Shown here: positions 7,724-62,062 of the stretch, piece after piece
How the letters are laid out: the number at the start of each line of letters is the position of its first letter
How positions within the stretch are numbered: the first letter of the stretch is position 1
DNA from: Schmidtea polychroa
Lineage: Eukaryota
Direction of reading: 5' to 3'
NCBI GenBank assembly: GCA_044892525.1
Contig: CM097886.1
Span: forward strand, 66,712,001-66,776,000
Length of the DNA: 64,000 bases
Notes under the pieces: generated by a model
Told to the model about the DNA's origin: nothing
Database searches by the model: none
The model's input: only the letters and a program-made list of their open reading frames with translations
Made by a program: the position numbers and the translations under genes

Positions 7724-10700
7724 TTAGAATTCTTTCTTCATCGCCCCGAGAGCAAGTAGATAATCACAGTCAAATACTTTAATCTTTAAGTCTAGCGAAA
7801 AGATTTTATTTCGCATTTGCAGAAACTTTAAAATCACGGGAGCTTTAAACATTCCTCCACAGAAGTAAATCTAAATCAAACAATAATATTTTATTTAATA
7901 AATAAATACCGTTTTCAATTTATGAGTTTTACACAATTGAATTACGTGTATCATGGTTTCGTTGAAAAATAAACTGCTTAAAGATTCCAGTAAATCATCA
8001 GGGGAAAAATTCTCTTTTCCTTTATTGTAATCTGCACTTTTACCATATGAAAAAATCGGTAGATGTGGTGGCATTTTCCCATATGGTGATTTCTCATTGT
8101 CCGACATTACTTCCCATACTTGAGTGTCGGTATTTTCTCGATTGCCTTTATTTGCTTTTTCCATGACTTCATCATAATTCTATTTATATTATGTGATTAG
8201 AGAAACAATAANNNNNNNNNNNNNNNNNNNNNNNNNNNNNNNNNNNNNNNNNNNNNNNNNNNNNNNNNNNNNNNNNNNNNNNNNNNNNNNNNNNNNNNNN
8301 NNNNNNNNNNNNNNNNNNNNNNNNNNNNNNNNNNNNNNNNNNNNNNNNNNNNNNNNNNNNNNNNNNNNNNNNNNNNNNNNNNNNNNNNNNNNNNNNNNNN
8401 NNNNNNNNNNNNATTAATTCATATACATTCATATAATTCATGTAAGTTGAAAAAGTGACACAGTTCACTGACTTTACTATTCAGTAAAAACAGCTGTTCT
8501 AATAAAAAAAAACTGATTAATAATTCAAAACTTTTGAGAAATGCAATTGAAAAGCCTTATGAATGGCATAAACAGCAATCAGCTTTTATAACTAATAATA
8601 TATTTTGAAATAAATATTTAACAAATTCTTTTTCAATTTCCAAGCATTTCTAATCACATACTTCATAATTGCTCTTATTAAAGATTTTGTCAACCAGAAC
8701 ACGCTTTCCTTTCAGGACTTAGATCTCTAGATTTATCAGATTCTTTATAAACATTGTATGCAAACTTCGAGATATTCTAAATTTAACAAAGCCTGTGATA
8801 TTACTTATATTTTAGCATTCTCAGTAGCACTGAAACCTTCCTTCAAACAGTGCTTCATACTAGATAACATTTCCCATCTTTATTGACAAAATAATTAGAA
8901 AACTAAATAAATATCTGAACAGTAGAAATACGTGATTATGTAAACCACAACTAAAATCGTCATTTTATGTCACTACAAATAATTGATAAAGATTATCTCA
9001 ACATTTCACAAAATAAATGAATTCTCACATTGGAATCAACCAGACATTTACAGAGACCTCTAAAACTTTCTCCTCCACAAAACGTTGAATTTAACAGTTT
9101 AACTGATTTATCCTTTCTCACTAAAAAATATTTAAAGCTTGAACCAGCCAATACCAAAATATTCGGAACAGTGATGGATTCATCATCCTCAGGAGTTTCA
9201 CTGTCAGTTTTAATTTGCATCGCTCTTACAAACTAAAAATTTTTAAATATATTTAAAATTAGAACTATAAATAGTGCAAGAAATGAATCAAAAATTTTTC
9301 AATTTTCATTTTCAGAAAGTCATGAATTTAAAACAAAAAAAGAGGTTTCTGCTTTTGAGGAAAGTTTAAATTTAATTTAAATTTAGTTTTTAACAAAAAA
9401 ACATTATCACAAGATGAGCTCAAGGCATACCAAAGACAGGCTAACATAAATGATTAAGGAAGTCTCCTAAAAATTTATTATATATGGGTTGTCTTTTTCG
9501 TATTCAATATACTTCTAAGTGTTCAAAATTTAAAATCAGATTGAAAAATTTTACCTAGTATAAAAATTTTAATTAGAAATTAAATTAACGTTTTTTTTAA
9601 AAATAATTTTTAAAAAATAAAAAGTAAATTTTAAAAATTTCACAAAAATCATCGAGAGTTTAAAAACAAAGTTCTAAACCGAAAAAGTCTCCATCAGCAT
9701 GGGCTTCTCCGATTCTGTATTAGGAAAAAATATATAAGACTTAATATGAAAAATAATATTTAATAAATTAGCAATAATAAAAATAAAAATAAACCAGGGG
9801 CTAAGTCTGTCAAATATAATAATCTTAAAGATGGCTTCTTTAATTTAAAATTTAAGGATTAGGATTATTCCCATAAAATTTTTACACAATATATTCACAA
9901 TTTCAGTTGACTCGAAAGCATAAATCTGATTTAATTGAACTCAACTCTCAATGAATAACTATTTTACAAATTTATCCTCGATCTGACTGGAAAATTTCAT
10001 GTACTGCTTTTAGTTCTTCGACAAAAATGACAATTTGCATTCCAAATTATCTAACTAATATAAGACCGTTCTCCATTAATAATCCTTGGGAATCTTCGCT
10101 TAAATAACATATGAATCAAATTTTGTATCCTGATATTGTCGAAATTGACTTTCTTTTTCTTTCTGATGGTGATTGATGGAATCGATAAATTTTTAATTAA
10201 TTTATATTTAAAAATTATATACACCAAGAGAGCGATTTTCATTTAATAAATAATTTATTTGTATTTATTTTTTTAATTACCATCTGTTTCCCGATTTCTC
10301 CCAAGATATGTTAACTTTTTAGTCTGTAGTTATTTACCTTTAATTATTATTGATTAATTTGACATCTCATATGTATCTGTTACAGTTAAAGTATAAACAT
10401 AGACAATTAACTAATTAAAGTTTACATTGCAGTTTTAAATTCAGTTAAAGTATACAGTCACTAGTAAAATTTTTAGACAATAATAAACTGTATATTATAT
10501 CTAGGTAGTATGCTGTATTGCAACATGGAATGCTAGAATAACATTTATGTATTTTATTAGAGAATGTAAAAATTTTTTGTATATGTATACATTTAACTCT
10601 CACATATCTACTTAATTTCTGATTAATTTAAATAACATTATTATAAATATATGAATATCAAAAAAACATCGATATATTTACTGATACATAGTCAAACATT

Positions 10701-13700
10701 TTAATACATACAATGTCAATTGAAAAGAAATCAGCGGTGAAATTTGAAAAAAAGTTCTTATTATTATATATATAATATAACAATAATTAGGAATTTTAAT
10801 ATTTTTTATGATGTGATATATTGCACATAAATACAAATTATTATACTACTATTCATAGATACTAGAACTATGATTTTTGTATGACAGTTATATATTAGCA
10901 CATGGCCATTGAAAATCCTTATCAAACATTTGCCAAGTGTATTTCAAGCGTTTTTGGAATGAAAATACTAATGAGAATATAATTTTTATCAAAACGCATT
11001 ATAAAACAGGTTCACAAGTTCTAGTGAGAATATTATAATATATATTAGATTAATTGTCTAATTGACAGTTAATAAAGGCTCTCACGATTATAATTATTAT
11101 AACAATATAATGTCCAAATGAAACAATAAAATCATAAAGAATTAAACAAAACATCGTTTGGGAAAATTTTTGAATAATAATATACAATTATTGGGTTTTT
11201 GAGGGCCGGCCGCCACTATAGTGGCAAACTAGTTCTAAAAATATCAAATGTGGTTTTTCTTATATAAAATTAAAAAAGAAAATTTTTTTTCAAATAAAAA
11301 AATTTCATAAAACACACTGTTTACATAATATTAGCTAAAAACTAAAATAAATCAAACTATAATGAAAATCACATTTCTGTGTGTATTTTTATAAAACTAA
11401 ACAAAACGAATGATTTTTTTCAAGAAATTTATTTTCTAAAAACTACGAATCAATATGTAAAAATAAGAAAAGACAAAAAATTCAATCGAGAAATAAACTA
11501 TTTTATTTTTATCAATAAATATCAATATGAATGAAATAAACCTATGTGAATATTGAACAATATTTTATAAAAAATATATTATAAAATATTTATATTCATG
11601 TAAATAAATTTTATTTTAAAAATTTTAAAAATTATAAAATTAATTTTTTTTTCCAGTTTTTAATGAAATAAATAAAATATTTATAAAAAAAATAAAATTA
11701 AAATATTTAAATAAATTTAAAAAAAAGCCGGTCCTCAAAGGGTTAAAGTCGGTACTGATTCTGACTTCTCGTGCTCTTTGTCTCGGGTATGAAGATAAAA
11801 CCCAACACAAAAACACTTTATTAAATATCAACAAATTTGGATACAAAGTTTTCAATTACACTCTTTTAGTTCTGCACTCTTTAATAAAAATCGAAAGCAC
11901 TCTTCGACCAACTGGCATTTCCCCAATATTGTTGTTTACTTTTATATTGTTACTCGTCCTGCTTACCTTCACAATTAAAATAGCATAGATCAAAATTACG
12001 ATAAACAGAATAATTGAATAGGCGTCTTCTCGTCTTTGTTCACAGATCTCGTTTTGCTAATTTAAAACTTAAAATTTTCTACCACTCGGGCATCCTACAT
12101 GTGTCAGGTTTTTTAAATGGCTCGGGCTTCCCACCTACCTAATAAATTATAAACATTTATTTTTAATTAATTTGTATTTATTGAATATATTTTTCTTGGG
12201 ACCCCTCACCAGTTCCATATTATTATATATGTGTTCGTCATAACGTTTACTACCCGTACATACCAATTACACCCGACATACATCATTTTGATTTTTTTTC
12301 AAAATTTTTAATTTTTAGATTTTTATAAGTTTTCGTATTTTATTGATTTGTACATTTAACGTTTTGCACATTCCAACTTATTTTGAGCTTATTTTATACG
12401 AACTCCAAAACAATTTTCCCTACATTTCAAAAAAATGCAAAAATTAATGTAAGAATTTGAAAAAAATGAACGAAATGAAATGACATCTTTTGCATAATAA
12501 TAAAAACAAACCATAGGGCTAATAAGGCTCTAGGACCCCATCGATCGAAGTATATGTACTAAATTTTCAATTTTTATATTAATTTCTAAATTGTGTACTC
12601 GGAAAACACAAGGAATACATATTTTAATTTTCTACATTACTTGAGAGCACTATCGAACTATTTTATTAGTTTTAACCTCCTTCTTTAAGTAGGTAAAAGA
12701 TTGAAAAATTTATTATCCATTTCAAAACGAAATTTTTCGAATGAAAAAACGTTATGCGTCTAAAAAGCAAATTACATACCGTATATACTCACATATAAGC
12801 CGACCCCCCAAATTTGGTTGATTAAAATGTCAAAAATAGATGATCCGCGTATAAGCCGAAAAATTTCCAAAATTCTCACAAGGATATTTATTAATATTCA
12901 AGATGTTCAGCGCATCGTGAGTCTTGTTTCAGACATGCTTCCATTATGATAATAATCATGTCTTCACAGTCATGATTACCTATACTATTTGATTTCAAAA
13001 ACCTTTCATTTGTGTAGAAAACCCAATTCTAACAGTTTTGGTTCAATTTTTTGCAGGTTTCGAAATTCCAATTACAACCTTCATCATAAATCGGTTTTTT
13101 CGACCGTCTATGGAAAATCACACAATATATTTTTAACAAGACTATTGGAGATTTTTCGGTCAAAAAGTTTATATTTACGAAAAAATACAATAGTCTTAAT
13201 TTTACAAAAGAGTAATGCTAGCAAAAAATTAATATACTTTATATATTACTATATCTTAAATAAAATCTCACTAATCACCTACTAATTTCGGTTATAAGTA
13301 CGTACTTGTCATCTTTATTTGTCACTTATTATTGTAGATAGTTGTTATTAGTTTATTATGATCATGATTGTTTAAATAGAGTGGGATTTGATAAATATAA
13401 ATTTAATTCTGCTTAAGTATAAAACTACTTTGATCTCTTTGATTTTTTAAGAGTTTCTCTTTTAATTTAATAATATAAGTTTGACCTCGGTATATCCGTG
13501 ACAAAAGTCATCATAGATTAGATTCAAGACATTTCAAAAGCAATTTTTTAAAATAAATCCCGATTCTGCACAGTAGAAATTATAAAATGACAATAAAAGT
13601 CATTAAAATAAAAATTTTTTTTTTAATATTTAGAAATAAATCTATTTTAAGCATAAATTTCATAAAAAATTTTCATAAAGTTTAAGTTGATAAATGCATG

Positions 13701-14329
13701 CNNNNNNNNNNNNNNNNNNNNNNNNNNNNNNNNNNNNNNNNNNNNNNNNNNNNNNNNNNNNNNNNNNNNNNNNNNNNNNNNNNNNNNNNNNNNNNNNNNN
13801 NNNNNNNNNNNNNNNNNNNNNNNNNNNNNNNNNNNNNNNNNNNNNNNNNNNNNNNNNNNTTAACATGGGATTATTCATATCTACTTTATACCTATCTATA
13901 TTCTCTACTATATTTTCGCTATCAGTTTTATATTCTACTTCAGCTAATTTCATATTTTTTGATATCAAATCAAATCCATTGAAAACCGCAAAACTTTCAT
14001 CCACTAAAATCGCGTCGATATTAAATATGGATTTTACAATTTTTCTAAATAAAATCAATAATTCTTATGTGCCATATCAAGCATTACTTGATGGATAATT
14101 TTTTAAATCCCGTCAAATATATTTTGGAACTTGTCTGCCTATCTTTATAGATTTCAAGAAGGAAACTTTCTAATTTCTCATTAATAACCGTTGAAAATCG
14201 CAAAGAAACTTTATCAGTTCGACAAATAAACACAATCTTTGCCGTTACGAGTCCACAGTCAATGGCTAAACTATTCTCATCAATAAATGGGAGGAATGAT
14301 TCCAATAAAACTGCTCCTTCAATAACCAT
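7724..14329 (-). CDS. Divergent type II pantothenate kinase-like protein, copy A
   Basis: Exons 14329-14088, 14044-~13860 (end in gap), 9232-9029, 8179-7910, 7870-7724. Motifs LAIDCGLVTAK, VDESFAVFNG, LVLAGSSFKY, GGESFRGL, GNRENTD, FSYGK, YFCGG, YLLALGA align in order with PanK motifs. Intron phases 2,0,0,0. Joining exons 2 and 3 across the gap is inferred from copies B and C. Confidence 0.8.
11190..11750. mobile_element. piggyBac-like MITE (left end degraded)
   Basis: The right end reads TTAACCCTTTGAGGACCGGC on the minus strand. The left end retains TTTGAGGGCCGGC. The interior is AT-rich. Confidence 0.5.
11747..12278 (-). mobile_element. Solo-LTR-like repeat (same family as the 41-46 kb copies)
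   Basis: Starts TGTCGGGTG on the minus strand. Shares the blocks GGGACCCC, CTCGGGCTTCC, TTCGACCAACTGGC and the 3' AATAAA...CACGAGAAGTCAGA...CCGACTTTA with the repeats at 43-46 kb. Confidence 0.6.
12777..12870. mobile_element. pogo/Tigger-type MITE end (partial)
   Basis: TA followed by CCGTATATACTCACATATAAGCCGA, same terminal family as 14620, 26598 and 53461. Confidence 0.6.
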
Positions 14330-20004: not shown

Positions 20005-23000
20005 TCATTTTATTAAAGCACCTAAAGCAAGAATATAATCAACATTTAAAACTTTCGTCTCTATTTGATTTGGTATGTATGTCACTCCAAATTGAAGATA
20101 TTTCGTATATATTGGAGAGTTAAACATATCCCCACAAACGTAAACCTAGACCAATAAATAATTGCTGGGTATCAGAATGAAATTACATAATTTGTTTTAA
20201 AGACTTTGCACAACTTATGTATCTGATTATTTGTTTCGTTTAAAAATACAAAACTCAAGGAGTCCAACAAATCGTTTGGGTTAAAATATTCTTTATCCTT
20301 ATTATAATCCGCACATTTGCCGAAGGACAACATTGGTAAATCTAGAGGATTTTCTCCATACGGCGAATTTGTATTATCAGCTATCATTTCCCATATTTGC
20401 GAATCTATTTTCTCTCTATTACCTTTAGATGCCAGTAAAATGTTCTCATTAAAATTCTTAATGAGAAAATTATAAATTTAAGAAACTTTTATTAGAACAA
20501 TAATATAAAAAATAATTACTCAAAATATTTTTATCCAGAAGGGTAACTTAGGATAATAAAGGTATTTGTTTGTTTGTTTCATTAATTTAAAAACATTGTA
20601 TGCGGGACACGTACTAGTACGTTTTTTTACGATTGGCACTTGAGTGCGGGTCACGTACTAGTACGTTTTTGAGATGAATTACTGACATGATTAAAAATCG
20701 AATACTTTTTTTTGTTTATTGTTTTGTTTTGTTATTCATTATTTTGGTAACTTGGTGAAAACGCGGCCGAGTCCATTTTCAGAGACCGACGGTAGCGGTC
20801 ACTATACGACCATTTGAAGAAATCAAAAAAATATATAATGTAATTCGAAAAAATTAAAACTATATATATATTTAAATTTTCATATTTACGATATTATTAT
20901 AAATGTTCCCACCAAAATATGAAACGTTGGTTAAAAATTTAAATAATTTTCGATTTATTGAGATTTTATTGAAAAACTAAATTTGCACAAAAAACCCCGC
21001 TACAGCACAACTCCGCCAAAAAATGTACCCGCATACAATGTGTTAATCATGTAAATTTGATTGAAACGTTGATAAGTATTCCGACATTGGTTTTCAACTG
21101 AAATAATATAATATTTTGGCCTTTTCTGTGTGTAACGAGGTACGGTACTCCGGGTACAAACATACCACAAGCTAAAAAAGAATAAATAAATAGTTGCCAT
21201 CTGAAAGATTTAGAAAGTTTCCTTACCAATACTACCAGTCAATTAATTTTCAAGCAATTTGAAAACAATTTCTTTACAATAAGTGAATTTGAATGAAATA
21301 GCAAAGCTTCAAAGTGGAAAGAGCCTAATCATGTACATATATATTTCAAACTATAACCGGATTTTATAAGTAGTCGCGTTAAAATTTTCCATACTTCATT
21401 TTGTATTTGTTTTATGTAAATAGTATAATCTTTGCTGATACATGTACTTAAAAACTATATATGAATGTTGTTTAAATAGTTGCGTATTAATCGTCAACGA
21501 GTGAAACAGAATCATGATAATTTAAGGAATATTTTATTAAGTGCACTATATCAAGGTTCATTTTTCGGAAAAACTCGCACATTTATCAAAAATATTGCAT
21601 TTAAACAATTGTTAAATTAAGTATTTTGCATTATGAAATAATTAAAAATTACTTTTTAAAATAGAATTTTATGTTTTAATTTGTATACTGTTAGAACATA
21701 AAAATAACTAATCAATATAAACTTAAAATTTAAACAGAAAACGGCCTTCATTTTTAACGGGTTACTTAATCAACACACATACACACATAAATATAAGCAG
21801 ATGAAACGTATAAACTTACAGAAGGATGCCCACACACTTGGTAGTGGCATACAGTCCAAATAACAGGACAAAATCAAAATAGATTTGGTTCTATCCACAA
21901 ACATCATAATGGAAAATAAGTACACAATTTTGAGTTAATTGTATTTTCTATGCAACAACAAAAAATGTCACGTTAATATTATGTTTAAATTGTCTATTTA
22001 TAACAGATTCAATTTAGAAATAATTTTAATATGTCGGTGACCGTACAATATATAACTTTTTGATAGAACCACCAAATATAGCAAAGATCACACGACGTGC
22101 CAAACTCGTTATATTAATGTTTTTTTAGCGCAGACCAAAATTATTAAGAATAAAAAAGATTTGTTTGCTGCTGTTACTTTCCAGTAAATATCAACAATTT
22201 TAAATATAGTGTTTTTTTTTCAAATGAAATGCGCATTTAAATATAACTTGCATTTTAAAAACCTGCGAGCGTACTATATTCGAGGAAGGACTGTAGCCAC
22301 AAATAATTATTAAGTAAAATAAATGAAATGATTTTATAAACGTTTTTGACAAAAAATAAAAAATTATTGGCAATTTTTTCGCAAAATTATAAATACTATA
22401 TTCTTACATTTGAGTCTACTAGACATTTAAAGATACCTTTCAGGGTTTCTCCAGCAAACATGGAATAGCTTATTAGTTTCACTGTTCCGTAATTATTTAG
22501 TAAATAATATTTAATGACTGAGCCAGCCAATATCATGATGCTAGGAAATTTTATAACTCCGTTATTAGACTTTGAGTCTTCCGTTGATGGAAATTTCATT
22601 GACTGAAGAAGCTGAAATAAAAAAAAAACTCATTAATTTCTATTGGGGATAAAGTTGTGCAAATCTAACTGAGCACATTTGCATTGTTTTGAAAAGAGTA
22701 AAAGAGTAAAACATTATTAAAAAATTAAATGCCTTATTACAAATTTTGCAATTTTATTTACTTAAAACTCATATTATTATGAGTAAACATTGAAAGTTAA
22801 AAATCTTTTTAAGAAGTTATATACAAGAAAGTCTAATATATTTATTAATAATAATTTTTAGAATACACATTTATGGATTTCACAAAAATTAAAAATTTAT
22901 TTTTAATCTTTTGCATTTTTCACTTTTTAATTGCACTAAACTTATATTTTTATAATTTTTCATTTTTTAAAAATATATGTCGAATATTACTGATGTTTAA

Positions 23001-24063
23001 TAAAGATTAAATAAATTAAAACATGTGATCATGAGGAATATCTTTTCCGAAATAGTAATCTGTCTCTCAAAATGCGTGACGAATGGCAGGCGATCATTGT
23101 AAAACAGATATTCTCAAATCAGATATTATCCCGTCAACTTGAAGAGCATAATATAAATATTTAAAGCAAAATATTATTTGTTTAGGACAGTGGTTCTCAA
23201 ACGGTGTTCCGCGAAAAAAATGACATTTTATCTTTAAATTTGCATTTAAGATACATATCATCAAAAACCTCAATTAATCTTTTTATAAGATGATTCAATA
23301 AGAAAGCCGTTACACAGATATATAAACATACAAATATGAAAGTGTTTTTATTGCTTGTTATTGTTGCGCGTGGTATTTCCTTTGCTTATAAGAAGGTATT
23401 GTTTACGTTTACGACAGATTTATAGTAATTTGTGATTGGTCACTCATTGTGGGCAAGTAATTTTTTTGTCAGTGTTCCGCGTAAAAAAATCATGTGAATG
23501 GTGTTCCGCGCTTTTATATTAATTGAGAACAACTGGTTTAGGAGAACATCAACATAAAGTCTAATAAAAATGAATTATTAAATACCTTTTCCCATAATGG
23601 ATTGGAAAAGTTTATTTTATATTTCTCATAGAGATGGACGCCCCCTTCTACTTTTATTTCAATTTCACTCAATTGATAATTATCCGAAATCAATTGCACT
23701 CCATGAGAAAGTGCTGAAATCTCCTCAACAACATTTGCATCGGCATCAAATACAGATTTTACCATCGTTCTAAGACATTCTATAAAAAAAATGAAAATTT
23801 ACAATTTACTTTGCCCATAGATTTTTAAATCCAACTACAAAAATTTTCTCAAACGCATTTTGACCAAATGTTTCTTGAATTTCCAAAAGAGCATTTTCCA
23901 ATTCCTCATTGAGAACGCTTAGAGAACGCAACACCCGTTCATGATTTTCAAGTCCAACACTGAAAACTATCTTGGACGAAGAAATGCCACAGTCAACGGC
24001 CAACTGATTACCATTAATAAATGGTAATAATGATTCCGGTAGCTGTACAGCTTTATTCAACAT
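20005..24063 (-). CDS. Divergent type II pantothenate kinase-like protein, copy B (350 aa)
   Basis: Exons 24063-23810, 23769-23586, 22611-22408, 20456-20187, 20145-20005 splice GT-AG into one open frame. Motifs [52 protein letters not shown]. Confidence 0.88.
20591..21042. mobile_element. piggyBac-like MITE in intron 3 of copy B
   Basis: Inverted ends ACATTGTATGCGGG / CCCGCATACAATGTG next to TTAA. Internal duplicated motif TGCGGG(A/T)CACGTACTAGTACGTTTTT. Confidence 0.6.
23188..23535. mobile_element. hAT Charlie/Buster-type MITE in intron 2 of copy B
   Basis: TIR CAGTGGTTCTCAA / TTGAGAACAACTG. Exact 8-bp TSD GTTTAGGA (23180-23187, 23536-23543). Confidence 0.92.
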
Positions 24064-25845
24064 TTCAACGTCAATTAAGAAGTGTGACCAATAAGTACAA
24101 CTTAAAATCAAAGTACAAAAGGTGAAGAATATTACGTACAAGCACAATGTGACAAATACAAACATACATTTTATTATTTATTAATTCAATCTTTACGATT
24201 CTATATTGGTAAAGTTTTGACGGCTGACGGCTCTTAGTTAAAAATGCAGATTACAAAGATCACAAATGATATATAAGTAAAATCATTAAATTTTTGTTCA
24301 CCTTTAATCTGTTTTTATTTTCTTTTTAAATATCATTTATTTTTATTATAACTATAAGTCTATTTTTTTAAGTGTAATTGAAAATAAATGATATTTTAAC
24401 ACAAATAAAATGACAATCAACTCTTATGTGAAAGAAAGCCAATGGAATGTGTTATATAGAGGAGCCGGTGCTATAAAATTAATTAGAAAATTTTTAAAAT
24501 TTAAAAATAAAAGTTACACAACATGAAATTTCATTATTTAAAATATCTAATTAAATTTTTAAGGTTGCATAAAAGTTAAAATTTAATCTCATGTTTATTA
24601 AATGATATAAACACAAATGAAATATTTAAATTTTCTTCATTAAAACAAAAATACTTTTATCATAACACAATAATAATTATACCTGTTATTGGTTGTGTAT
24701 TATTTTAAGTTGATCATTATCTTTTTATTAATGATTTGTGTTTGGAAGATTTATAGAACCCAATAGAGTCACCTATAAAAATATTTGGCGGGACAGTCGG
24801 GGTGCGTGTATGTAGTGCGTGCTACAATATAAATAATAAACAAATAACAAAAACAGTTATTAACAAATAACAAAAACAGAATTACACTTTTTATTCAAAG
24901 ATAATAAAAAATGTCACGCACTTTATGTTGTTGAAGATAGTATCTCTTTGGATTATATTTTCTTTAATCTTAAAGTGAATTGATTTTGTTTTATTTCAAT
25001 TTTTTAAAATTTTCCATTCTCTATAGTAAATTATAACTATAGAGAATTGCTATATAGATCCTTTTGTTGGATCATGGGGGCCGTTATTCGAATTGAGTTA
25101 AATAGTATAATTTATAATTACAATAAAAAAATTATGCATAAAACATTAACATTACATTACAATACCCAATAAATAAAAATCTAACTGTTTATAGATTTGT
25201 AAGCATATGTTAATTTTTAATTATTTTGAATTATTATTATATTCATTAAAACAAAATATTAGAATATCAAAATTAAGCTCAATGAATAAAGAATTAAACA
25301 GTTAACAATTTGATATCATTATGACATTTTTTGAAAGTTTTATGAGTTACTATCAAAAAGGTGCGTTAAAAAAGTTATGAAAAAATTCGGCAAATATCTT
25401 TAATTAAATAATTATTTACAACCTTTGATATAAATGAGGAAGGCCAACAATATTTTCGATATTTAATTAAAAATGAAAAATTCTGATGACTTTGACATAA
25501 ATATTTATTGTTCACCACAAGAAAACATTTACCTTGACATCATTTTAATAAATAACTACAGAAAATATTGAATGTTAAATCAAATAATTAATAATTAATT
25601 AAATAATTCGTTACCAATGATGGCGAAGCTCGTGATATAGCCCATATTGATCTAGGCTGCTCATACTTTGAATAAAATACACATGCTGACCATTGTTCAA
25701 AATTTTACAACATTAAAAATTTTTCAAAATTATTTTTATCGTGCAAAATTTTCAAAATTACAAATTCAAAATGACAAACGTTATGCACAAAATTGTAAAT
25801 AAAAAATAATTAATATTTCAAAAAACTCTTTACATGTTGGCAGCG

Positions 25846-27080: not shown

Positions 27081-27725
27081 TTTTAGCGAAGTTGATGTTA
27101 TTTTTGTTTAGTTTTTATATGATATAAGTTTTGTTATTTTAATTGTGCAGTAATCCATCTTTATAATTTCATTAAAGAATAATTTTTAATTTCTACTGTT
27201 TTGTACTACTTAATAAAAGTTAGAAGCTGTGAAGATGTTAAGTGTCACAATTGACTTTTTTAAAAATTTTCCTTTGTGCTTTAAGTGCTAACAACCTTTT
27301 ATATTAACTCTGTGACTATTACTAACTATAGCCGGTTAAAATTACGGGAAGAAAATCAAATTTTTTACTACATTTTCAAAGAAATTTTTTTATTCATTTC
27401 AAAAGCGCTTTAGTTAAAACATTTTGTGGTTATTTTGGAATATTTTAACAATCTATCCTCATTGAAGATCANNNNNNNNNNNNNNNNNNNNNNNNNNNNN
27501 NNNNNNNNNNNNNNNNNNNNNNNNNNNNNNNNNNNNNNNNNNNNNNNNNNNNNNNNNNNNNNNNNNNNNNNNNNNNNNNNNNNNNNNNNNNNNNNNNNNN
27601 NNNNNNNNNNNNNNNNNNNNNNNNNNNNNNNNNNNNNNNNNNNNNNNNNNNNNNNNNNNNNNNNNNNTTTTTGTCGGATGTCTCACTTGAATAAAATAAA
27701 CAGTACAAGCTTTGTGATACCCAGT

Positions 27726-28682: not shown

Positions 28683-31600
28683 TCATTTTTCCAGGGCACC
28701 CAAAGCAAGAATATAATCCACATGTAAAAGCTTCGTTTCTATTAGCATTGGCATAATCATTTCACTAAGTTGAAGAATTTTGGAAAATATTGGATAATTA
28801 AATATATCTCCACAAAAATAAACCTAAACCAATTAATATCTATTTTCATTCAAAAGGAAATTACATATTTTATCTTGAAAGCCTTGCATAACGTTTTTAT
28901 TTGATGATTTATTTCCATTAAGAATAAAAAACTCAAAGACTCCAACATGTCGTTCGGGATGAAATCCTCTTTACCTTTATCATAATCGGCACATTTACCA
29001 AAAGAGAATATCGGAAGATCAGGAGGAAATTGTCCATATGGTGAAATTGGATTATCAGACAAAACTTCATAAACTTGTGTATCGGTTTTCTCTCTATTAC
29101 CTTTATATGCCAGCAACATGTTTTCCTTGAAATTCTAAATTTTCAAATTATGAATTTGTGGACTTACATATAAACATTACAAATATTAATTATTTTTCAT
29201 CAAATAATTTAGTTGAAACTTACAAATGTTCACTGACAAATTTACAATAGTTATTATTTGTTTTAATAATAGTTATTTGTTTTATTATTTACATTTTAAT
29301 TTTTATTATACTATACAAAAAGATACCACTTTATACTTAAAATATATAAAACATGCACAATAAAATATTACTTATAAAATAAAGACTATTTTTGAAGAAA
29401 AAATAATCTAATTATAAAAAAATGAAAAAGTTACTATGATTATTGAGAACATCTGAAAATTTAGGATCAACTAAAACATTCATAAAAAGTCTAAATTAAA
29501 CATTAAACATTCAACTACACAATTCAGCCATATGGGTTATTTAAAACTCGCTCAACATTGCTTTATACAGACTTGGTAGCTTTTTATTTTTACAGTTGTT
29601 GTTCAAAATATATATTAGATTCAGTGATTATTTTTAAAGTAGCAAAGTCAGAACGTGCTTGCATGATGAATGTTGAATTCTGGCTTCTCAGGTTATAATG
29701 TTAAATAATAAAAATAATAAAAAATGACATAATCTGAGGAGCCACATATTAAACATTCATTAAACAGCCATGAAGACATTATTACAAAATAATTATAAAG
29801 GTTTACATAATACACCAATCCTTCGAATTACGCGGTACCCATTTTACGTGGTTTCACTTTTACGCGGTCATAAAAAATAATATTTTTTAATGAAATCAAA
29901 CATATTTGGTGGCAAGTGTCTCTCAGTGACATCGATGAATTGTTTATTGAAAAGGAAATAGACGAAGAAGAATTGATTTATATGGTGTCAAGAAACGAAC
30001 AAGAGAATGTTGAAAGTAGCGTTGATAGTAATATTACTAATAAATCAAATAAATTTACATGTAAAGACATTTCTGAAATTTTACAATTGGCCAGTAACTT
30101 AGAAAATAAGGTTTTGGCCACTGATCCTGATATTGACCGTGCTGTTAAATTTCAGCGAGACATTAAAAGCCTTTGCGCACAATACAGTGAAATTTACAAA
30201 GATTTAAAAAAAAAGAAAAAACAAAAATTGGTTACAGACTATTTAATAAGACGAGAAGAAGAGCATCTGCTGGATTTGAATCCGATGATAGCAGCGATTT
30301 CGAGCCAAAAAAAAAGAAAAAATTGGTTGAATTAGTATATAGTAGTGAGGAGGCGGAATAATTAAATTACAATTATTCCTTTTAATATACCTTTTAACTA
30401 TGAACATGTTATAAATTTTACAATTTAAAATTTAAATGTCAATTTTTTAAATCTATTTCTAAATAAAATTGTATTTTTTAATGCCTTGTTTTACGCGAGT
30501 TTCTGGAACCTATCCCCTTACGTTATATGAACTGGAAGTCTCGATTTATGCAGATTTTTATTTTCTGGAACCTATCTATCATTTTTGTATGAATTTGAAA
30601 TGTCGATTTACGCGGTTTCGATTTGCGCGTTAGTTTCTTGGAACGTAAATCTAATATCTCATTACAATTGCATCACAACCAAGTTAATTAATTTATTAAT
30701 AAAAGTAAAAGTGTAAATTTGTTTTCGTATTTTTTTAAAAATCCAACAATAATAAAAAATAATAATATTATACAATATTTTCATAATGTAATGATTGTAT
30801 ATTGTTGTATTTTCATGATATTACATTTATAGAACGACACAATTCACGTATTAACACTGATAAATTTTGTAAATAAATAATTTCTACATCTTACATTTGA
30901 ATCGACAAGACATTTAAATAGACCCTTCAAGGTTTCACCAGCAAACATGGAATAGGAAATTAATTTCGCTGTTCCATCACTGCTCATTAAATAAATTTTA
31001 AAAGCCGAGCCACCCAATACAACGATGCTTGGAAAATTTATAACACTCTCACCGGATTTTGTGGCATCTGGCGTTGAAACCTGCATTGCTTCAATAAACT
31101 GAAATATTAAAACATTATTAATTGCTGCATACATCTATTTTTATTGAAATAAATTAAAGAAATACATTTCATCTGTATTATACTATGTTTCTTTAGTTGT
31201 ATAAAAACCTTTTAGCATTATTAACCATTCCTATTATTGGAATAGTACAATCAATGGAGTCAATACCAATCAGTCAGCAATACAAGAATACATTAGGGAA
31301 CCAGCTGATAAAACTGTAAGACTGTCTAAATCTTTACAAGAATACACATCTTATTTCATCATGTTGTTATAAGTCGCCCCATGAATACCAGAAGTTGGTA
31401 GCAAAATCAAGGGCAAACAATCAAGAGCAATATAACAAAGTTTTTCTTTGATATCTCGCACAATTTCTCTTTCGGCCGTAGTTGTAAAACTGTATCCTCT
31501 GCCTGTCATAATTTTAATTGGATAATTAGTTAAGTCTCTTCCGGCCGAATCAATTCTCAAAATAGCATGAGGTAGAGTATATGCTTCATAAATTGACAGT

Positions 31601-34600: not shown

Positions 34601-35845
34601 TAAGTCATCATTTCACAAATGAGTGCTCAATAATCGTATTTATTCGTCTACATACGTTTTGTATTTGAATGATTGACTTTTATATTTCGTTCTTTGTACT
34701 CGACGGGATGCTTGTACAGTACGGTATATATACAGAGTTAACACCCCAGCATCGATATCTCATCATCATATTTAACTGTGAATGTTATTCCTGGTGCCAC
34801 ACAACTCCATAATCATTCAATTTGGCTAGAAAGATTCGAATATCCTATGGTGAAAACAGATGATTCGGCCACATTAGTAAATATAAATAATTACGCGAGC
34901 AAATAATCAGAAGAAAACGAAAATTATTCAAAAATCATTAACAAAGGAAACTACTCAATCTAGATTTTCACCATTAATTATATTTGTAAGGTTTTATGGT
35001 CTCTATATATATATACAGTTCAGTAGTTACAAGTATTTTTATTTGTATATAAATTAAGATTTATTTCGATAAGGCTCCGGAGGCCGCACACGAAGCTCCG
35101 GCAGGCTGCAGGTTCCCCACCCCTGGTATAGAGCGTGATATTTCCTACAGTCCACTGAATATTAGTTATTAAAATTCCACGACAAATTAACTCGTCATAA
35201 TCATTTAATTGAGAATTTTACTATAGTGAGTTTATTCACCATACCCAGTCAAAAGGTAATTATATAATATAGTATATTTATTATAAGAAGACAATTTATA
35301 ATTAAAAGATATTAGTTGTTTGAATGGACATTATTAAGCGATGTATGAAATATTATTAATTGACTACTTTTTTGAACATTGGATTATTCATATCTACTTT
35401 ATATTTCTCATAAAGTGATAAACTTTCTTCACTTTTTATTTCTATTTCACTCAATTGAAAATTATCCGAAATCAATTGCACTCCATGAGAAAGTGCTGAA
35501 ATCTCCTCAACAACCTTTGCATCGGCATCAAATACAGATTTTACCATCGTTCTAAGAAATTCTATAAAAAAAATGCAAATTTACAATTTACTTTGCCCAT
35601 AGATTTTTAAATCCAACTACAAAAATTTTCTCAAACGCATTTTGACCAAATGTTTCTTGGATTTCCAAAAGAGCATTTTCCAATTCCTCATTGAGAACGC
35701 TTAGAGAACGCAACACCCGTTCATGATTTTCAAGTCCAACACTGAAAACTATCTTGGACGAAGAAATGCCACAGTCAACGGCCAACTGATTACCATTAAT
35801 AAATGGTAATAAAGATTCCGGTAACTGTACAGCTTTATTCAACAT
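28683..35845 (-). CDS. Divergent type II pantothenate kinase-like protein, copy C (350 aa)
   Basis: Exons 35845-35592, 35551-35368, 31098-30895, 29134-28865, 28823-28683 have the same lengths and phases as copy B and give an open frame. Motifs [52 protein letters not shown]. Confidence 0.88.
29810..30650 (+). mobile_element. pogo/Tigger element remnant (transposase C-terminal tail)
   Basis: ORF 29916-30335 [18 protein letters not shown]...[17 protein letters not shown] resembles the Tigger tail. It is flanked by TTTACGCGG-type subterminal repeats. Confidence 0.7.
31270..31760 (-). pseudogene. Actin pseudogene, intronless and internally deleted, in intron 2 of copy C
   Basis: [69 protein letters not shown], then a jump to [13 protein letters not shown]; frameshifts present. 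Confidence 0.92.
34369..35125. mobile_element. hAT Buster-type non-autonomous element in intron 2 of copy C
   Basis: TIR CAGGGGTTGGGAACC / GGTTCCCCACCCCTG. Exact 8-bp TSD GTATAGAG. Confidence 0.92.
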
Positions 35846-35994
35846 TTCAACGTCAATTAAAAAGTGTGAACAAATAAATAAAACTAATGATTAATGTTCA
35901 AAAGGTAAAGAAAATAAATATTTGACATGTAGCACACTTATCACACATTTACATATTGATCAGTTGCACTGTGCAAATCTATATTGGTCAATTT

Positions 35995-46270: not shown

Positions 46271-46495
46271 AGATCAAATTGTCTCTCCTCATGTTTCACT
46301 ATTTTAAATAAGCGAGAGTGTATTATTGTTATATTTTTCATAATAATAATAAAAAAGTGAGTCAAATAAATTGAATTTTTACAAATACAACTTTTAATGA
46401 AGAACTTTGATAAAAACACTCATCAGCCTTTACTTTAAACTATTTAAACTCCATTCAGTTGCATTATTTGTTTTCATCGTGAAAAATCTAAGAAA

Positions 46496-49016
46496 ATGAA
46501 AACATTTAATATAGAAAAATCCATTCTTACAAATTCTGAATGCTTTCTCACAATTGACATTGGAGTTTCAACAATAAAATGCTTCTACCTCGACAAAGAA
46601 AATGACCATTATAACGAAAATTCACAGAATAATGATGTAATTTTTACATTAAAATCTACAAATTTCAACATTCAAATTGAAAACTTTCTACAAAATATCA
46701 AATCTAACTTGTCAACTCTTGAAACCATTGAAACAAAATTAATATTAATTTGTGGAATTCAATGCAAACATTTCCAGTGAACCTTTGACGATTATAAAAA
46801 TGAAATTTTAATGATAATCTCTTAGATCGGAAATCTCGAAGGTGTTTGGTTGTGAGGTAAAAGTTGTATCAGAAATGACTGCGTTTGCGAATGGTGTGAG
46901 ATATTTTGTAAATCATCATGAAAGGGATACATTTTACCATCAAGCCGAAAATATTTCAGATACTCCTGCAAAATTTCAAAGTAAAATGCGGGAACAAGTG
47001 ATTATTAGTAATAAAATTAATTTCAATTAATTGTCATTTAGTTATTGAAAAGTTGGAAAGCAAAACGCGAGTTATTATTAAAGGATTCAACGAGTGAAGA
47101 ATATCCATGTCTCTATGTGAATGGGGGATCCAGTTGCCGTTATATATTAGTTGATGAATATGGTAAAGGAAAAGAGGTTTCATTTAATAGTTACGGAGGA
47201 AGCACTTTCCAAGGCTTAGCAAAATGTCTAATAGATGAAAATGTAATTTAATTTATTAAATTATAATAGTATGGTTATAAGCCGAAGGATCAAACATATA
47301 ATAATTCTTTCCAAACATTTAAAACTAAATAATTTTTGAAACTTCATATATTGTTTTAAATACTTTATAAAACCTTTCACTTTTTCATAATTTTATTTCA
47401 ATTTGACCAAACAAATCGTCATACAATACATGTACATATATATACGTGCGCAAAAAAAATTTGACAGTATACTTTCTTTTCATTTTTGTCAGTATTCCTT
47501 TACTTTATTCACCATAACTCATACGCAATAATAAAAAAATTATGAAATCTATAGAAACTATAAATAATGCCAAAATGGATGTTTCAGTTCCAAGAAAACT
47601 TCGTTTAATTCACAGAGTCATCTATAGGCTGACATACAAAATGTTTTCAGCCAATAAAATGAGATCATGAATTCTATTTGATACAATACATATGTGAATG
47701 TAGAACATGTTGAAGCCGCTACGATGTGTCCAAGATTCTCACCAAAATGAGCACAACTGGCTCAGTATCTCAACGTGAAGGAAGTTGAAGAAAGCGAAAG
47801 ACAACTGGCAGAGAGAACCGGATCGTCAAATGTGTCACATTAGCCAATCGAGAAACAAAGCTTTCTGGTGTTGTGAATATTTTAAAATCTGACCATGGAA
47901 TAAACATCAGTCGAGACACTATTCGTCGTAGGTTGAATGAACAGGGGATAGCCACTTACTCTTGTCGACATGTTCCTATAGAAGGCGAGTCATATGACTT
48001 CATATGACCAAATATAGCTTTTTAATTTAAGCAATTTTAAACACCTTTATGGCCACGGCCCTCTTAGACAGTTGGGTACTTACTATTCTTTGGTTCTTAA
48101 TTTGTCAATCTTAACCATTCAACGCTTCCTTATCATTTTACCGCTTGAGTGCAACATTTATTGATAAAATGTTTTATTTTTTGGTCATTTTGATCTGTTA
48201 ACGTTTTTGAAGGCATTTCACTTATTTTAATTTTGAAAATATATCAAAAATTGAATTCTACGCAACAGAAACCTGTTGCAATGCCTTTTCACTTGTTATT
48301 TAACACTTGGTAAAGGCAAAGCCAAAAATTTGTTTTGGTTAGAATTAGATTTTTGATATTTTGTCAGAATGAAAAAATAATATACATATATCAACAAAAA
48401 CATATTTAGAAACGGATAAAAGTTCCATGACAAACATCACGGTAAAAATAAACGTATGCATATAAACATACAGCATTTTTATATATTAGTAAAAACGAAG
48501 TAACACGTCCTTTGAAATTTATTTTCTTTAATTAAAGAACACTTCAAAACTGCTTGAAATGGCTGAAGTTGGATTCAAAGAAAACACTGACACTCAAATC
48601 AAAGACATATTTGACGATTTCAAAAACAACCCATACGGAAAATTTTCACCAAATATGCCCTTATTTGCATACGGAAAAGCAACGGATTATACGTCAGTTG
48701 ATCAGATCCCATTTAAAGATGAAGACATTTCCCAATCTCTGGTATCAATGGTAATCCAGAATTCAATATTGTCTGCTAATAGAATAGCATTTACGACATT
48801 ATGTAAAAAGGTTTGTAACAAAAGTTCTGAAGATATATTTTTACTCTTTTCTAAACTTAGATTTATATTGGAGGGTATTTGTTTCAGCACAAATCCTTCT
48901 TGGTGGAATACTCTAAATTCTGCGTGAGGCTACCAGGAATAATAAAAATACACTTTTTGAAGTGTGGATTCGAGGCAAATCTTGGTTTGTTGGTTAACCA
49001 TAATCAAACAGAATAA
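46496..49016 (+). CDS. Divergent type II pantothenate kinase-like protein, copy D (360 aa)
   Basis: Exons 46496-46776, 46826-46997, 47042-47242, 48538-48810, 48861-49016 give an open frame. Motifs LTIDIGVSTIK, VSEMTAFANG, LYVNGGSSCRY, YGGSTFQGL, FAYGK, EDISQSL, YIGGYL. Confidence 0.9.
47450..47980 (+). pseudogene. Tc1-like transposase N-terminal remnant with left TIR, in intron 3 of copy D
   Basis: YDVSKILTKMSTTGSVSQREGS*RKRKTTGRENRIVK...HGINISRDTIRRRLNEQG matches the Tc1 HTH and GRPRK linker. A TIR-like TACGTGCGCAAAAAAAATTTGACA lies near 47450. Confidence 0.8.
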
Positions 49017-53458: not shown

Positions 53459-53460
53459 TA

Positions 53461-55321: not shown

Positions 55322-56951
55322 ATGGAGAAACTGAAAATAGAAAAATCCAATTTGACAAGTAGTTCTACTTACGTAACAATAGACATTGGAATATATTTAC
55401 TGAAATGCCTTTACATCAACCATGAAGATGATGAATACAATTCTGATTTACAAAACCATGATATTATTTTCACATGCAAGATCATCGAGGCTAAAAATGA
55501 ATTTTGTGAATTAATTAAAACAATTAAATCTAAAATAACAAATTTGACATTTTATCAAACCAAAATCGTCTTACTCTGTGGGATGAAGGCTAATCATTAT
55601 CGGTTGGATAAAAATATTATAATAAATAATTAACATAATTCAGAGGACAAATTTCTAAAATATTTGATTGTGAAGTAAAACTTGTATCTGAAATGCAGGC
55701 AATGTCAATTGGGCTTCGNNNNNNNNNNNNNNNNNNNNNNNNNNNNNNNNNNNNNNNNNNNNNNNNNNNNNNNNNNNNNNNNNNNNNNNNNNNNNNNNNN
55801 NNNNNNNNNNNNNNNNNNNNNNNNNNNNNNNNNNNNNNNNNNNNNNNNNNNNNNNNNNNNNNNNNNNNNNNNNNNNNNNNNNNNNNNNNAGAAAGTGTAG
55901 AATTTCCAATGTTATCAATGCACAGTAAGTCAATTGATATGGTTAGTTACTTTTTATGAAAACTATTTCACAATAAAATTAGTTTCGTAGATGTTGGAGT
56001 GATAAAATCGAAAAAGAATGCATCAATAAAATGAATAAGAATTTTCCAATTCTCTATGTTAGTGTAGGATCCGTATCAAGGTTTATATTAGTCAATGAAA
56101 CTGGAGAAGGAAAGGAGATTTCATTGAATACACTAGGGGGTGGTACATTTTTAGGACTAGCAAAAAGCTTGCTGAATGAAAATGTTTGTTTCTATCTTAT
56201 TTCAAATTNNNNNNNNNNNNNNNNNNNNNNNNNNNNNNNNNNNNNNNNNNNNNNNNNNNNNNNNNNNNNNNNNNNNNNNNNNNNNNNNNNNNNNNNNNNN
56301 NNNNNNNNNNNNNNNNNNNNNNNNNNNNNNNNNNNNNNNNNNNNNNNNNNNNNNNNNNNNNNNNNNNNNNNNNNNNNNNNNNNNNNNNNNNNNNNNNNNN
56401 NNNNNNNNNNNNNNNNNNNNNNNATTGTTTTTATTTATCAAAATTCCAGAATTTCAACAGTATTATATCTAAAGCTGAAAATGGAGATAAAGGAAATATT
56501 GATACCCAAAGAAAAGATATAAAACCCGCAAAAGATTTAGAAAATTCTTCGAGTGGAAGGTATTTGGCTGACTTGACTGTATTTCCATTTGGTAAAGCTA
56601 TGGATATTGAATCAAATTATACCTTACCGTACAAACTCGAAGACATTTCTCAATCTTTAGTTGCAATGATTATAGAGAGTGTTTCTTTTTTCAGCTTTCG
56701 TGTAGCGTTTATGACTTGTTGCAAAAGTGTAAGTTTTTAAAGAAAATCAAAAGTATTTAAATTGATCAACATTTCTATTTTAAAATTAGATTTATTATGG
56801 AGGGTGCTTATTCCAACCGAAAGCTTTTCGAATAGAATATAGAAAATTCTGTCAACGCTTACCAGAGTTAATAAAAAGTTATTTTCTAAAAACAGGAATG
56901 GAAACAAATATTGGTCTATTATTATTAAATAAAACAAATTTTACAATTTAA
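55322..56951 (+). CDS. Divergent type II pantothenate kinase-like protein, copy E (gap in exon 2)
   Basis: Exons 55322-55602, 55644-55941 (contains a gap), 55983-56183, 56450-56728, 56790-56951. Motifs VTIDIGIYLLK, VSEMQAMSIG, LYVSVGSVSRF, TLGGGTFLGL, FPFGK, EDISQSL. Confidence 0.85.
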
Positions 56952-59468: not shown

Positions 59469-62062
59469 ATGAAAACATTTAATATAGAAAAATCCATTCT
59501 TACAAATTCTGAATGCTTTCTCACAATTGACATTGGAGTTTCAACAATAAAATGCTTCTACCTCGACAAAGAAAATGACCATTATAACGAAAATTCACAG
59601 AATAATGATGTAATTTTTACATTAAAATCTACAAATTTCAACATTCAAATTGAAAACTTTCTACAAAATATCAAATCTAACTTGTCAACTCTTGAAACCA
59701 TTCAAACAAAATTAATATTAATTTGTGGAATTCAATGCAAACATTTTCAGTGAACCTTTGACGATTATAAAAATGAAATTTTAATGATAATCTCTTAGAT
59801 CGGAAATCTCGAAGGTGTTTGGTTGTGAGGTAAAGGTTGTATCAGAAATGACTGCGTTTGCGAATGGAGTGAGATATTTTATAAATCATCATGAAAGGGA
59901 TACATTTTACCATCCACCAGAAAGTGTGTCAAATATGTATGAGCAAGTTCATAGTAAAATGCTGGAAAATGTAATTATTTATATAAAAATTAATTTCAAT
60001 TAATTGTAATTTAGTTATTGAAAAGTTGGAAAGCAAAACGCGAGTTATTATTAAAGGATTCAACGAGTGAAGAATATCCATGTCTCTATGTGAATGGGGG
60101 ATCCAGTTGCCGTTATATATTAGTTGATGAATATGGTAAAGGAAAAGAGATTTCATTTAATAGTTACGGAGGAAGTACTTTCCAAGGCTTAGCAAAATGT
60201 CTAATAGATGAAAATGTAATTTAATTTATTAAGTTATAATCCTATGCTTATAGCTGAAGGGGAGGGGTAGAACTATAATATAAACTTTTTTTTCTTCAGA
60301 GCCATGGCCGTATTAATAAGTTTGAGCGCCCTGGGCTAAATAAAATTTTGCACCCCTACATACTCTTATTATAAAAATTCAATTTTATTTTCAAAAATTC
60401 AAAACTTAAATATGTATTTACGCAAAACAAAATTCAAAAAATTTATATAAATATGTGAATTAAATATTAATTTTTAATTTAAATATGTCTTTTGCGGCAT
60501 TTATTTTTAGCAAATATATCTATAATTTTCTTGTGATCCATTTTCTCAAGGACATCCGATTCTATTGACAAAATACTTAAATTATTTAATTTGTATTGTC
60601 CTAAAGATGATCTTAGATGATTTTTTATTCTCTTGAGAGTTGAAAACGACCTTTCTCCGCTACAATTTGTACAGGCGATACTTAAATATATTCGTAGAGC
60701 TGTTGTTATATTCGGAAAAGTGCATTCAATTTGCGATTCAATTATTGTTATATTTTTTCTCATCCATATAATTTATATGGATGAGAAAAAATATAACATT
60801 GAACACATTACTAACTTAAATCACAGATACGCTAAATATAAAGAAAATTACTTTTTTTTAAATTAAAAAAAAGCAATTAAATTTCACCATATTGTTTTCT
60901 TAGCGCCCCTGGGCTGTAGCCCAATTAGCCCTATGGTTAATGGGGCCATGTTCAGAGCTATTATAACTCTTTTTTGTCAGAGTAAACTTTCGATTTTATA
61001 ACTCTTCAAAAATTATAAATAAAATATTTTAATTTGGTTAAACATTGCTGAATTAAAAAAATACTATATAATATAAATAAAAAGTGATGATTACTTGGTA
61101 GCAGCATCAATTGAAAAGGGCTCCATTTTAGTCGAAATTTTTTTCATTTGTATTAAATATATTATTCGCAGCAAAAGGCCTTAATTATCATTAAATTGTT
61201 TTAAAATAAAAATATATTATAAAATTTTATTACTGCATTAAATCACATACATAGTTTTTATATTTAATTTTTAATTTATTTAATAATTGATTTAATATTA
61301 ATAATTCTTATAATTTTAATTTGATTATGTTAATTTCATCTTTAAATTATTAATAATTTATTTTTGATATATAATCTAACGTTGATTATGATTTATATTA
61401 AAAATATTAGATTAAAATTAAATAGCATTAAATTAAAATTTATCACTATTGCATAGTAATAGTTTAATTTATGTTATTGAGACTCTTATTTATTGTCATT
61501 AAGGTTCTTATTAATTGATTAAAAGATTTAATAATGTTTAATGATTCTTTTCAATTTACATATTTTAATTTAAGAACATAAATAAATTGCTTGCGATGGC
61601 TGAAATTGGAAACAGAGAAAATATTGACACTCAAATCAAAGACGTATTAGATGATAATAAACTGTCCCCATATGGAAAGTATCCACCAAATTTACCTATA
61701 TTTTCATTTGGTAAAGCAATGGATTATACTTCAACTGACAAAATTACATGTCAAAATGAAGACATTTCTCAATCCTTGGTGTCAATGATAGTTGACAATT
61801 CTGTATTCTTTGCTTTAAGGATAGCGACGATGACATTATGTAAAAAGGTTTGTAAAAAAAGTTCTGAAAATTTTATATTAAATGATTTTTTTTAATTTAG
61901 ATTTATTTTGGAGGTAATTTGTTTCAACACAAATCCTTTTTGGTGGAATACTCTAAATTCTGCATCAGGCTACCAGAAACAATAAAGACTCATTTTCTAA
62001 AGTGTGGATTCGAAACAAATATTGGTTTGGTGGTTGAAAATAATCAAACGGAATCCATTTAA
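59469..62062 (+). CDS. Divergent type II pantothenate kinase-like protein, copy F (362 aa)
   Basis: Exons 59469-59749, 59799-59970, 60015-60215, 61575-61847, 61901-62062 give an open frame. Exons 1-3 are nearly identical to copy D. Confidence 0.9.
60303..60950 (-). mobile_element. hAT non-autonomous element carrying the dimerisation domain, in intron 3 of copy F
   Basis: TIR CATGGCCGTATTAA / TTAATGGGGCCATG. Exact 8-bp TSD TTCAGAGC. ORF FPNITTALRIYLSIACTNCSGERSFSTLKRIKNHLRS. Confidence 0.93.

Follow-up and report, generated by a model that had tools for sequence, protein, structure and literature searches.

A 64-kb stretch of the genome of Schmidtea polychroa (assembly GCA_044892525.1, contig CM097886.1, positions 66,712,001 to 66,776,000; hereafter the window, meaning the whole stretch analysed) was found to carry six paralogous five-exon loci related to type II pantothenate kinase (PanK) at positions 7724-62062. 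The window has a G+C content of 27.3% and contains seven runs of N. Genes A, B and C are located on the minus strand, and genes D, E and F on the plus strand. Their sequences place the six in a pre-existing, rare and uncharacterised branch of the PanK-II family, in which they form two old clades, each of them a tandem triplet that has been partly homogenised. Compared with human PANK3, the side chains for pantothenate recognition are all replaced, whereas the catalytic core is retained. With a probability of about one in two, the gene products represent an uncharacterised PanK-fold branch of dimers that would bind ATP together with a small molecule different from pantothenate, as substrate for phosphorylation or at least as ligand, and that would not act as kinases of the coenzyme A (CoA) pathway.

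Gene models, assembly gaps and gene conversion

Stop-free segments of the window were compared all-versus-all by BLASTP. Exons 3 and 4 clustered as six members, and exons 1, 2 and 5 as three. Gene models with GT-AG introns were built by hand (Table 1), and the junctions were compared codon by codon across the six copies. A tblastn search of the window employing the six proteins and their relatives as queries revealed neither a seventh copy nor a stray exon. The intron phases are 2, 0, 0 and 0, and the introns occupy the same alignment columns in A-C and in D-F. Exons 1 to 5 measure 242-281, 172-185, 201-204, 270-279 and 141-162 nt, respectively. Introns 1 and 4 of all genes and intron 2 of D and F are just 39-61 nt long, and the remaining introns range from 0.27 to 4.6 kb.

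The starts of the models match those of two full-length transcript-derived relatives, P0001 and P0003 (see below), so that the five exons span the whole coding sequence. In gene A, a possible alternative in-frame ATG is present 19 codons upstream (14386-14329, minus strand); the downstream start is favoured by homology with B, C and P0003. Spliced open reading frames (ORFs) without internal stop codons were obtained for B and C (350 codons each), D (360 codons) and F (362 codons), and these four of the six genes can be called intact. Since about 8% of random codons would be stops at the composition of the window, frames of 350-362 codons are not due to chance; the probability of an open spliced frame of 350 codons was estimated at about 1e-13.

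The two remaining genes are cut by assembly gaps in exon 2. In gene A, the gap at 13702-13859 takes the 3' end of the exon beyond 13860, the last coding base that can be read; judging from the homologous exon of C, what is missing amounts to about two codons plus the donor of intron 2. In gene E, the gap at 55719-55889 takes the middle of the exon, of which the first 75 nt, including the context of the catalytic Glu, are readable. About 35 nt following this gap are open in a frame resembling P0001, and at least two GT-AG combinations would connect this tail to exon 3 without a frame shift. The first employs the donor GTTATC at 55911 in phase 0. The second employs the strong donor GTAAGT at 55925 and the AG at 55989-55990, which lies 8 nt beyond the usual acceptor, in phase 2. 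The pieces of A and those of E were joined with X in place of the unread letters. Neither gene can be called broken or intact on this sequence, and intron 2 of E may be in phase 0 or in phase 2. The gap at 8212-8412 lies within intron 3 of A, and that at 56209-56423, the seventh run of N and absent from the program's list, within intron 3 of E; in both cases the splice sites on either side are readable. The gaps at 27472-27667 and 28140-28499 are non-coding and located downstream of the stop codon of C (28683-28685), and the gap at 54734-55009 ends 313 nt upstream of the ATG of E.

DNA self-comparison of the window showed that the 3' halves of the paralogues share 74-78% identity and that their long introns are unalignable; the copies are therefore distinct loci and not assembly duplicates. 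Two nearly identical tracts at the 5' ends stand out from this divergence (Table 1). The tract common to D and F begins 14 nt before the ATG and ends 20 nt inside intron 3, and its intron 1 is identical in both copies. Outside the tract, the flanks of D and F are at random-level identity, and the 3' halves are 77.6% identical. B and C, which carry the second tract, are just about 74% identical in their 3' parts. From these comparisons, the tracts are ascribed to gene conversion between old paralogues and not to assembly duplication. Within the D/F tract, a diverged island of about 120 nt (D 46902-47021, F 59875-59994) shows 72-87% identity, with proportions of nonsynonymous (pN) and synonymous (pS) differences of 0.27 and 0.24. 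The island codes for a variable loop at the end of exon 2, and it would reflect either two separate conversion events or a loop that was spared homogenisation.

Ratios of nonsynonymous to synonymous substitution (dN/dS) were estimated with the NG86 method. Over exons 3-5, values of 0.35 (D-F) and 0.25 (B-C) were obtained. The range for unsaturated pairs was 0.17-0.41, with all values well below 1; most inter-clade pairs are saturated at synonymous sites, and NG86 is crude at such AT-richness. By this measure the six genes are judged to be under purifying selection.

A first-pass annotation of this DNA had described six intact five-exon genes with phases 2, 0, 0, 0. The six loci, the exon lengths and the phases in B, C, D and F agree with that description, but A and E, with gaps in exon 2, cannot be called intact. 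The same annotation had called the two groups very divergent, which was borne out by the identity of 22-29% between the proteins of A-C and those of D-F. Its suggestion that the frames are kept open is in accordance with dN/dS values that are not near 1, and its concern that the copies might be assembly duplicates was answered by the self-comparison.

Homology to type II pantothenate kinases and a rare subfamily

Pfam, NCBIfam, PDB and structure comparisons were performed with single exons and with the relatives P0001 and P0003, and the spliced proteins were scored with local HMMER. Exons 1-4 of gene D matched the Pfam family Fumble at successive profile positions (2-75, 94-138, 139-192 and 193-271), and exons 3 and 4 of gene E matched it with 29.2 and 19.5 bits. 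The exons of A-C gave no match when searched singly against Pfam; here the connection runs through a profile of the wider family. This profile, constructed from twelve members without P0001 and P0003, scored the six spliced proteins with 160-243 bits end to end (A 225, B 181, C 198, D 219, E 160 in two pieces, F 243). P0001 and P0003 themselves scored 92.8 and 50.8 bits against Fumble. In the PDB, a profile of exon 3 from all six genes matched human PANK3, PANK1 and PANK2 and yeast Cab1 at the expected segment, and the family profile matched PANK1 and PANK3 chains over the full length with an E-value of 1e-35. AlphaFold models of P0001 and P0003 had a predicted local distance difference test (pLDDT) score of 82 and a predicted template modelling (pTM) score of 0.82, and the top 50 Foldseek matches of these models were all PanK-II structures (TM score about 0.65-0.72).

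On the strength of these profile matches and models, the six genes are regarded as homologues of type II PanK (Fumble, ASKHA fold). The ASKHA/PanK-II fold is common, over the full length, to the window family and to the type II enzymes represented by human PANK1-3, yeast Cab1 and the type II CoaA of S. aureus (PF03630, TIGR00555), and the window proteins consist of a single domain of about 350-360 aa. Identity to the solved PanKs is only about 15-19%, and the scores against TIGR00555 are far below the cutoff of this PanK equivalog (247.6): the family members P0001, P0003, P0004, P0005, P0009, P0010 and P0012 reached 60-118 bits.

A profile of exon 4 from the six translations was searched against 1.84 billion representatives. 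It retrieved 29 proteins at E<=0.001 (best score 98.7 bits), and no canonical PanK was among them at this threshold. The retrieved proteins are about 360 aa long and carry a common motif set. Named members are solely from Macrostomum lignano, in the form of several distinct hypothetical proteins (for example PAA87033.1 BOX15_Mlig027024g1, PAA64627.1 BOX15_Mlig022685g1 and UniRef A0A1I8H9N6), and the rest are encoded on anonymous transcript-sized contigs. The Fumble proteins of M. lignano and P0001/P0003 resemble the window proteins in length, motifs and full-length profile match, and several divergent paralogues occur per genome. The subfamily motifs K-G-x-R-x-N-x-D-T-Q, SPYG, F-x-F-G-K and E-D-L-x-x-S-L were found in the window proteins, with a deviation of E at SPYG (S-S-S-G).

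P0001, the closest relative of the D-F clade, shares 42-44% identity with D and F (44% with F), and P0003, that of the A-C clade, shares 33-38% with A-C. Both are intronless full-length coding sequences, located on contigs of 1147 and 1182 nt from one JGI environmental sample (3300030569). Their G+C content of 32-33% is close to that of the coding sequences of the window (31.9%). The common sample and the matching base composition suggest that a single related organism expresses both clade types.

A maximum-likelihood tree was calculated from the six window proteins and fourteen relatives. The clades (A, B, C, P0003) and (D, E, F, P0001) each received 100/100 support, and both jointly were placed on long branches apart from the other members (94/90 support). 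Because each clade includes its own environmental relative, the split between A-C and D-F predates the divergence from the source or sources of P0001 and P0003. Approximately unbiased tests of whether the duplications within the triplets are older than the split from P0001 and P0003 gave p values of 0.135 and 0.397, and neither order was rejected; the position of P0001 next to E in the tree is accordingly given no weight. Most other subfamily members retain T-G-x-G in the PHOSPHATE 2 motif and a C-terminal G-H-x-G-A; compared with these, the two window clades with P0001 and P0003 are a long-branched, further degenerate pair.

Word-indexed homologue searches with P0001 and with a family alignment of 14 sequences returned only proteins that were already known. 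A metagenome scan with the exon 4 alignment yielded no relative, and a scan with the exon 5 alignment yielded just the contig of P0001 itself and a bacterial false positive (L004). Exact look-ups of two ORFs of the window produced no entry. No description of the SPYG-FGK subfamily was encountered in literature searches. A differentiation marker of planarians goes by the name of pantothenate kinase 1 (pk1; PMC5794332), and it may be either a canonical PanK or a protein of the SPYG-FGK type.

Active-site residues and possible functions

The roles of residues in human PANK3, including the pantothenate-binding Arg207 and Ser195, were taken from the literature (PMC8366970; also PMC8861153). As in type II PanKs, the Asp, the first Gly and the Lys of PHOSPHATE 1 (D-x-G-x-T-x-x-K), the Gly-Ser loop and the Gly of the ADENOSINE motif are retained in all six window proteins. 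The equivalent of the catalytic Glu138 is likewise present in six of six, including the readable part of exon 2 of E. At position 137, A-C carry an acidic residue (Asp or Glu), whereas D-F carry Ser. The equivalent of Arg207 has changed to Leu in A-C and to Glu in D-F, and that of Ser195 to Lys and Arg, respectively. The segment with which the partner protomer contributes Tyr254', Tyr258', Val268' and Ala269' to the pocket is replaced by SPYG...F-x-F-G-K, a conserved motif in the pocket-closing segment that is new in comparison with type II PanKs, and there is no Tyr in the columns of Tyr254 and Tyr258. The PANK3 numbering of this segment is in part presumed and was checked against an alignment of PANK1. 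The Tyr, Gly, Phe, Gly and Lys columns of the new motif are nearly invariant in twenty family members, with E alone carrying S-S-S-G.

The type II PanK homology and the remodelled substrate pocket of the first-pass annotation were both confirmed by these results, the former by the Fumble, PDB and Foldseek matches and the latter by the four replaced residues (Arg207, Ser195, Tyr254, Tyr258) together with a retained catalytic Glu. Its proposal of an expansion into a new family has to be modified in that the subfamily was pre-existing, and the array is not simply a local expansion of canonical PanK.

The motif SPYG...F-x-F-G-K sits at the place where, in PanKs, the second protomer reaches across the dimer interface to close the substrate pocket. 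In the reading preferred here, the gene products would form dimers, as all PanK-II enzymes do. The dimer would bind ATP, its phosphorylation substrate or at least its ligand would be a small molecule different from pantothenate, and the six would not be the CoA-pathway kinase of the organism. Of the two types, D-F would be more likely to be catalytic, with A-C as a more degenerate partner. Several observations weigh against this interpretation. At the PHOSPHATE 2 motif, PanKs have T-G-G-G and most subfamily members T-G-x-G, but every one of the window proteins reads G-F-K, G-I-Q or G-M-K, with a single Gly left, a change that may impair nucleotide binding; P0001 and P0003 are degenerate at this site as well. 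P0003 has His in place of the PHOSPHATE 1 Asp and P0001 has Ala in place of Ser192, so that catalytic residues are not strictly conserved in the two clades. Residues 195 and 207 vary across the subfamily, and no single substrate is thus implied. Finally, the modelled structures are those of P0001 and P0003, which are only 33-44% identical to the window proteins.

The loss of the PHOSPHATE 2 glycines in both clades would also suit non-catalytic pseudo-PanKs that serve as regulatory or scaffolding subunits, possibly with A-C paired with D-F or with a canonical PanK. We regard this as possible, although less likely than a ligand-binding or kinase function. The substitutions in P0003 and P0001 point in the same direction, as do the joint maintenance of both clades in the window, their presence in one environmental sample and the acidic residue 137 kept in A-C alone. 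PanK active sites, moreover, are assembled from two protomers (PMC8366970). Against pseudo-PanKs stand the PHOSPHATE 1 Asp and Lys, the Gly-Ser loop and Glu138, all of which are kept in six of six, and a pocket region that has not decayed but carries a strongly conserved new motif instead. In pseudo-PanKs of the PANK4 type, Glu138 (to Val) and Arg207 are both substituted, and a DUF89 phosphatase is present at the C-terminus (PMC8861153). The window proteins are similar to the N-terminal domain of PANK4 in the PanK fold and the loss of Arg207, and pantothenate phosphorylation would not be expected of them. They differ from it in that Glu138 is kept, the defining Glu138Val substitution being absent, and in that they end after the kinase fold at 350-362 aa without DUF89, so that the PANK4-like pattern considered earlier does not apply.

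In apicomplexans, a degenerate PanK2 pairs with PanK1 in a heteromer that is a true pantothenate kinase, and complementarity consists of Asp137 in one paralogue and Tyr254/Tyr258 in the other. The window resembles this system in the retention of two very divergent PanK-fold paralogues side by side, one of them with more deviant nucleotide motifs. The complementarity is half matched, since position 137 is acidic in A-C and Ser in D-F, but the two Tyr are found in neither clade. This counts against a pseudo-PanK pairing on the apicomplexan model, and the likeness that had been drawn to PanK1/PanK2 is a loose fit. By analogy, a heterodimer of the two clades is conceivable given the composite active site. 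An obligate heterodimer of a competent D-F protomer and a degenerate A-C protomer, with a composite SPYG...FGK pocket and a new non-pantothenate kinase activity confined to flatworm-like invertebrates, would be a more specific and rather doubtful version of it.

That the six are the real pantothenate kinases of the organism, fast-evolving and duplicated, is improbable. Their homology to PanK-II is clear and the catalytic Glu is retained, but Arg207, Ser195, Tyr254 and Tyr258 are all replaced, family members attain less than half of the equivalog cutoff of TIGR00555, and no canonical PanK was fetched by the exon 4 profile at E<=0.001 among the 1.84 billion representatives. Even less credit is given to a decaying or silent pseudogene array or to an assembly artefact in the form of duplicated or chimeric contigs. 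In favour of such an explanation are the seven gaps of the draft assembly, of which two interrupt exon 2 in A and in E, the near identity of D with F and of B with C in their 5' parts, and the fact that the strongest donor past the gap in E departs from the usual phase of the family. These points are outweighed by four complete ORFs of 350-362 codons in sequence of 27% G+C, by dN/dS values well below 1, by the divergent 3' halves and unalignable long introns that mark distinct loci, and by the occurrence of relatives as full-length transcripts. Least credible is a secreted parasite effector family, another suggestion of the first-pass annotation, for which copy number and divergence speak and nothing further, whereas the first beta strand of the kinase fold follows directly on the N-termini, which lack a hydrophobic stretch resembling a signal peptide, the closest relatives are from an environmental sample and the named ones from a free-living flatworm, and selection is purifying and not diversifying, save in one loop.

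Other features of the window and meaning of the locus

Table 1. Coordinates of the six PanK-like genes and of the two gene-conversion tracts in the window
Feature	Clade	Position	Strand	Exons or extent and remarks
Gene A	ABC	7724..14329	-	exons 14329-14088, 14044-13860 (cut by gap 13702-13859), 9232-9029, 8179-7910, 7870-7724 including stop
Gene B	ABC	20005..24063	-	exons 24063-23810, 23769-23586, 22611-22408, 20456-20187, 20145-20005; intact, 350 aa
Gene C	ABC	28683..35845	-	exons 35845-35592, 35551-35368, 31098-30895, 29134-28865, 28823-28683; intact, 350 aa
Gene D	DEF	46496..49016	+	exons 46496-46776, 46826-46997, 47042-47242, 48538-48810, 48861-49016; intact, 360 aa
Gene E	DEF	55322..56951	+	exon 1 55322-55602; exon 2 visible at 55644-55718, gap 55719-55889, tail from 55890 to about 55910 or to 55924; then 55983-56183, 56450-56728, 56790-56951
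Gene F	DEF	59469..62062	+	exons 59469-59749, 59799-59970, 60015-60215, 61575-61847, 61901-62062; intact, 362 aa
Putative gene-conversion tract D/F		D 46482..47262, F 59455-60235	+	97-100% identical including introns 1 and 2, sharp edges
Putative gene-conversion tract B/C		B 23700..24100, C about 35480-35885	-	97-100% identical over exon 1, intron 1 and the first half of exon 2

Between the two triplets, a long leucine-rich repeat (LRR) open frame (38435-40300, minus strand; LRR_8, 192.9 bits) is followed downstream on the same strand by an ORF with a weak Death-domain match (35995-36486; E-value 0.12). Both probably belong to one PIDD/LRDD-like gene. The best named full-coverage matches of the LRR gene were from Schistosoma mekongi, Hydatigera taeniaeformis and Paragonimus kellicotti, in a search dominated by non-diagnostic LRR matches. 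A death-domain-like ORF next to an LRR gene marks the DNA as metazoan, and a flatworm origin is suggested by the short introns, by the named PanK-like relatives and by these trematode and cestode matches. Intron 3 of gene D contains a fragment of the DNA-binding domain of a Tc1/mariner transposase (47789-48004, plus strand; HTH_Tnp_Tc3_2, 32.8 bits). Intron 2 of gene C contains a degenerate actin fragment (31354-31623, minus strand; Pfam Actin, 28.6 bits), likely the remnant of a processed pseudogene, which was the sole match when further ORFs of the window were searched against Pfam. Repeats of 74-79% identity without a Pfam match were located at 3887-4402 and 63448-63999 (both plus strand), 36748-36911 and 37417-37256, 43406-43628 and 44741-44522, and 27977-28072 and 61210-61111. 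These repeated ORFs and inverted or dispersed repeats are probably transposon remnants. Rfam and tRNA scans of the window gave no matches.

The locus offers a clean case of what is read here as gene conversion among old paralogues, in which the tracts are sharply bounded. The PanK-II fold is a well-studied drug target, and to our knowledge each of its characterised members is either an enzyme for pantothenate or, like PANK4, inactive. In the family described here, pantothenate recognition appears to have been dropped, another pocket motif is conserved, and several copies are present per genome, which suggests a kinase or ligand-binding activity that has yet to be assigned. In a flatworm, the group to which the named relatives and the best named matches of the neighbouring LRR gene point, the family could mark a lineage-specific metabolism. 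The six genes are regarded as a lead to an unknown enzyme activity rather than as ordinary vitamin B5 kinases, and they represent an uncharacterised variant, rare in public data, inside a known fold family.

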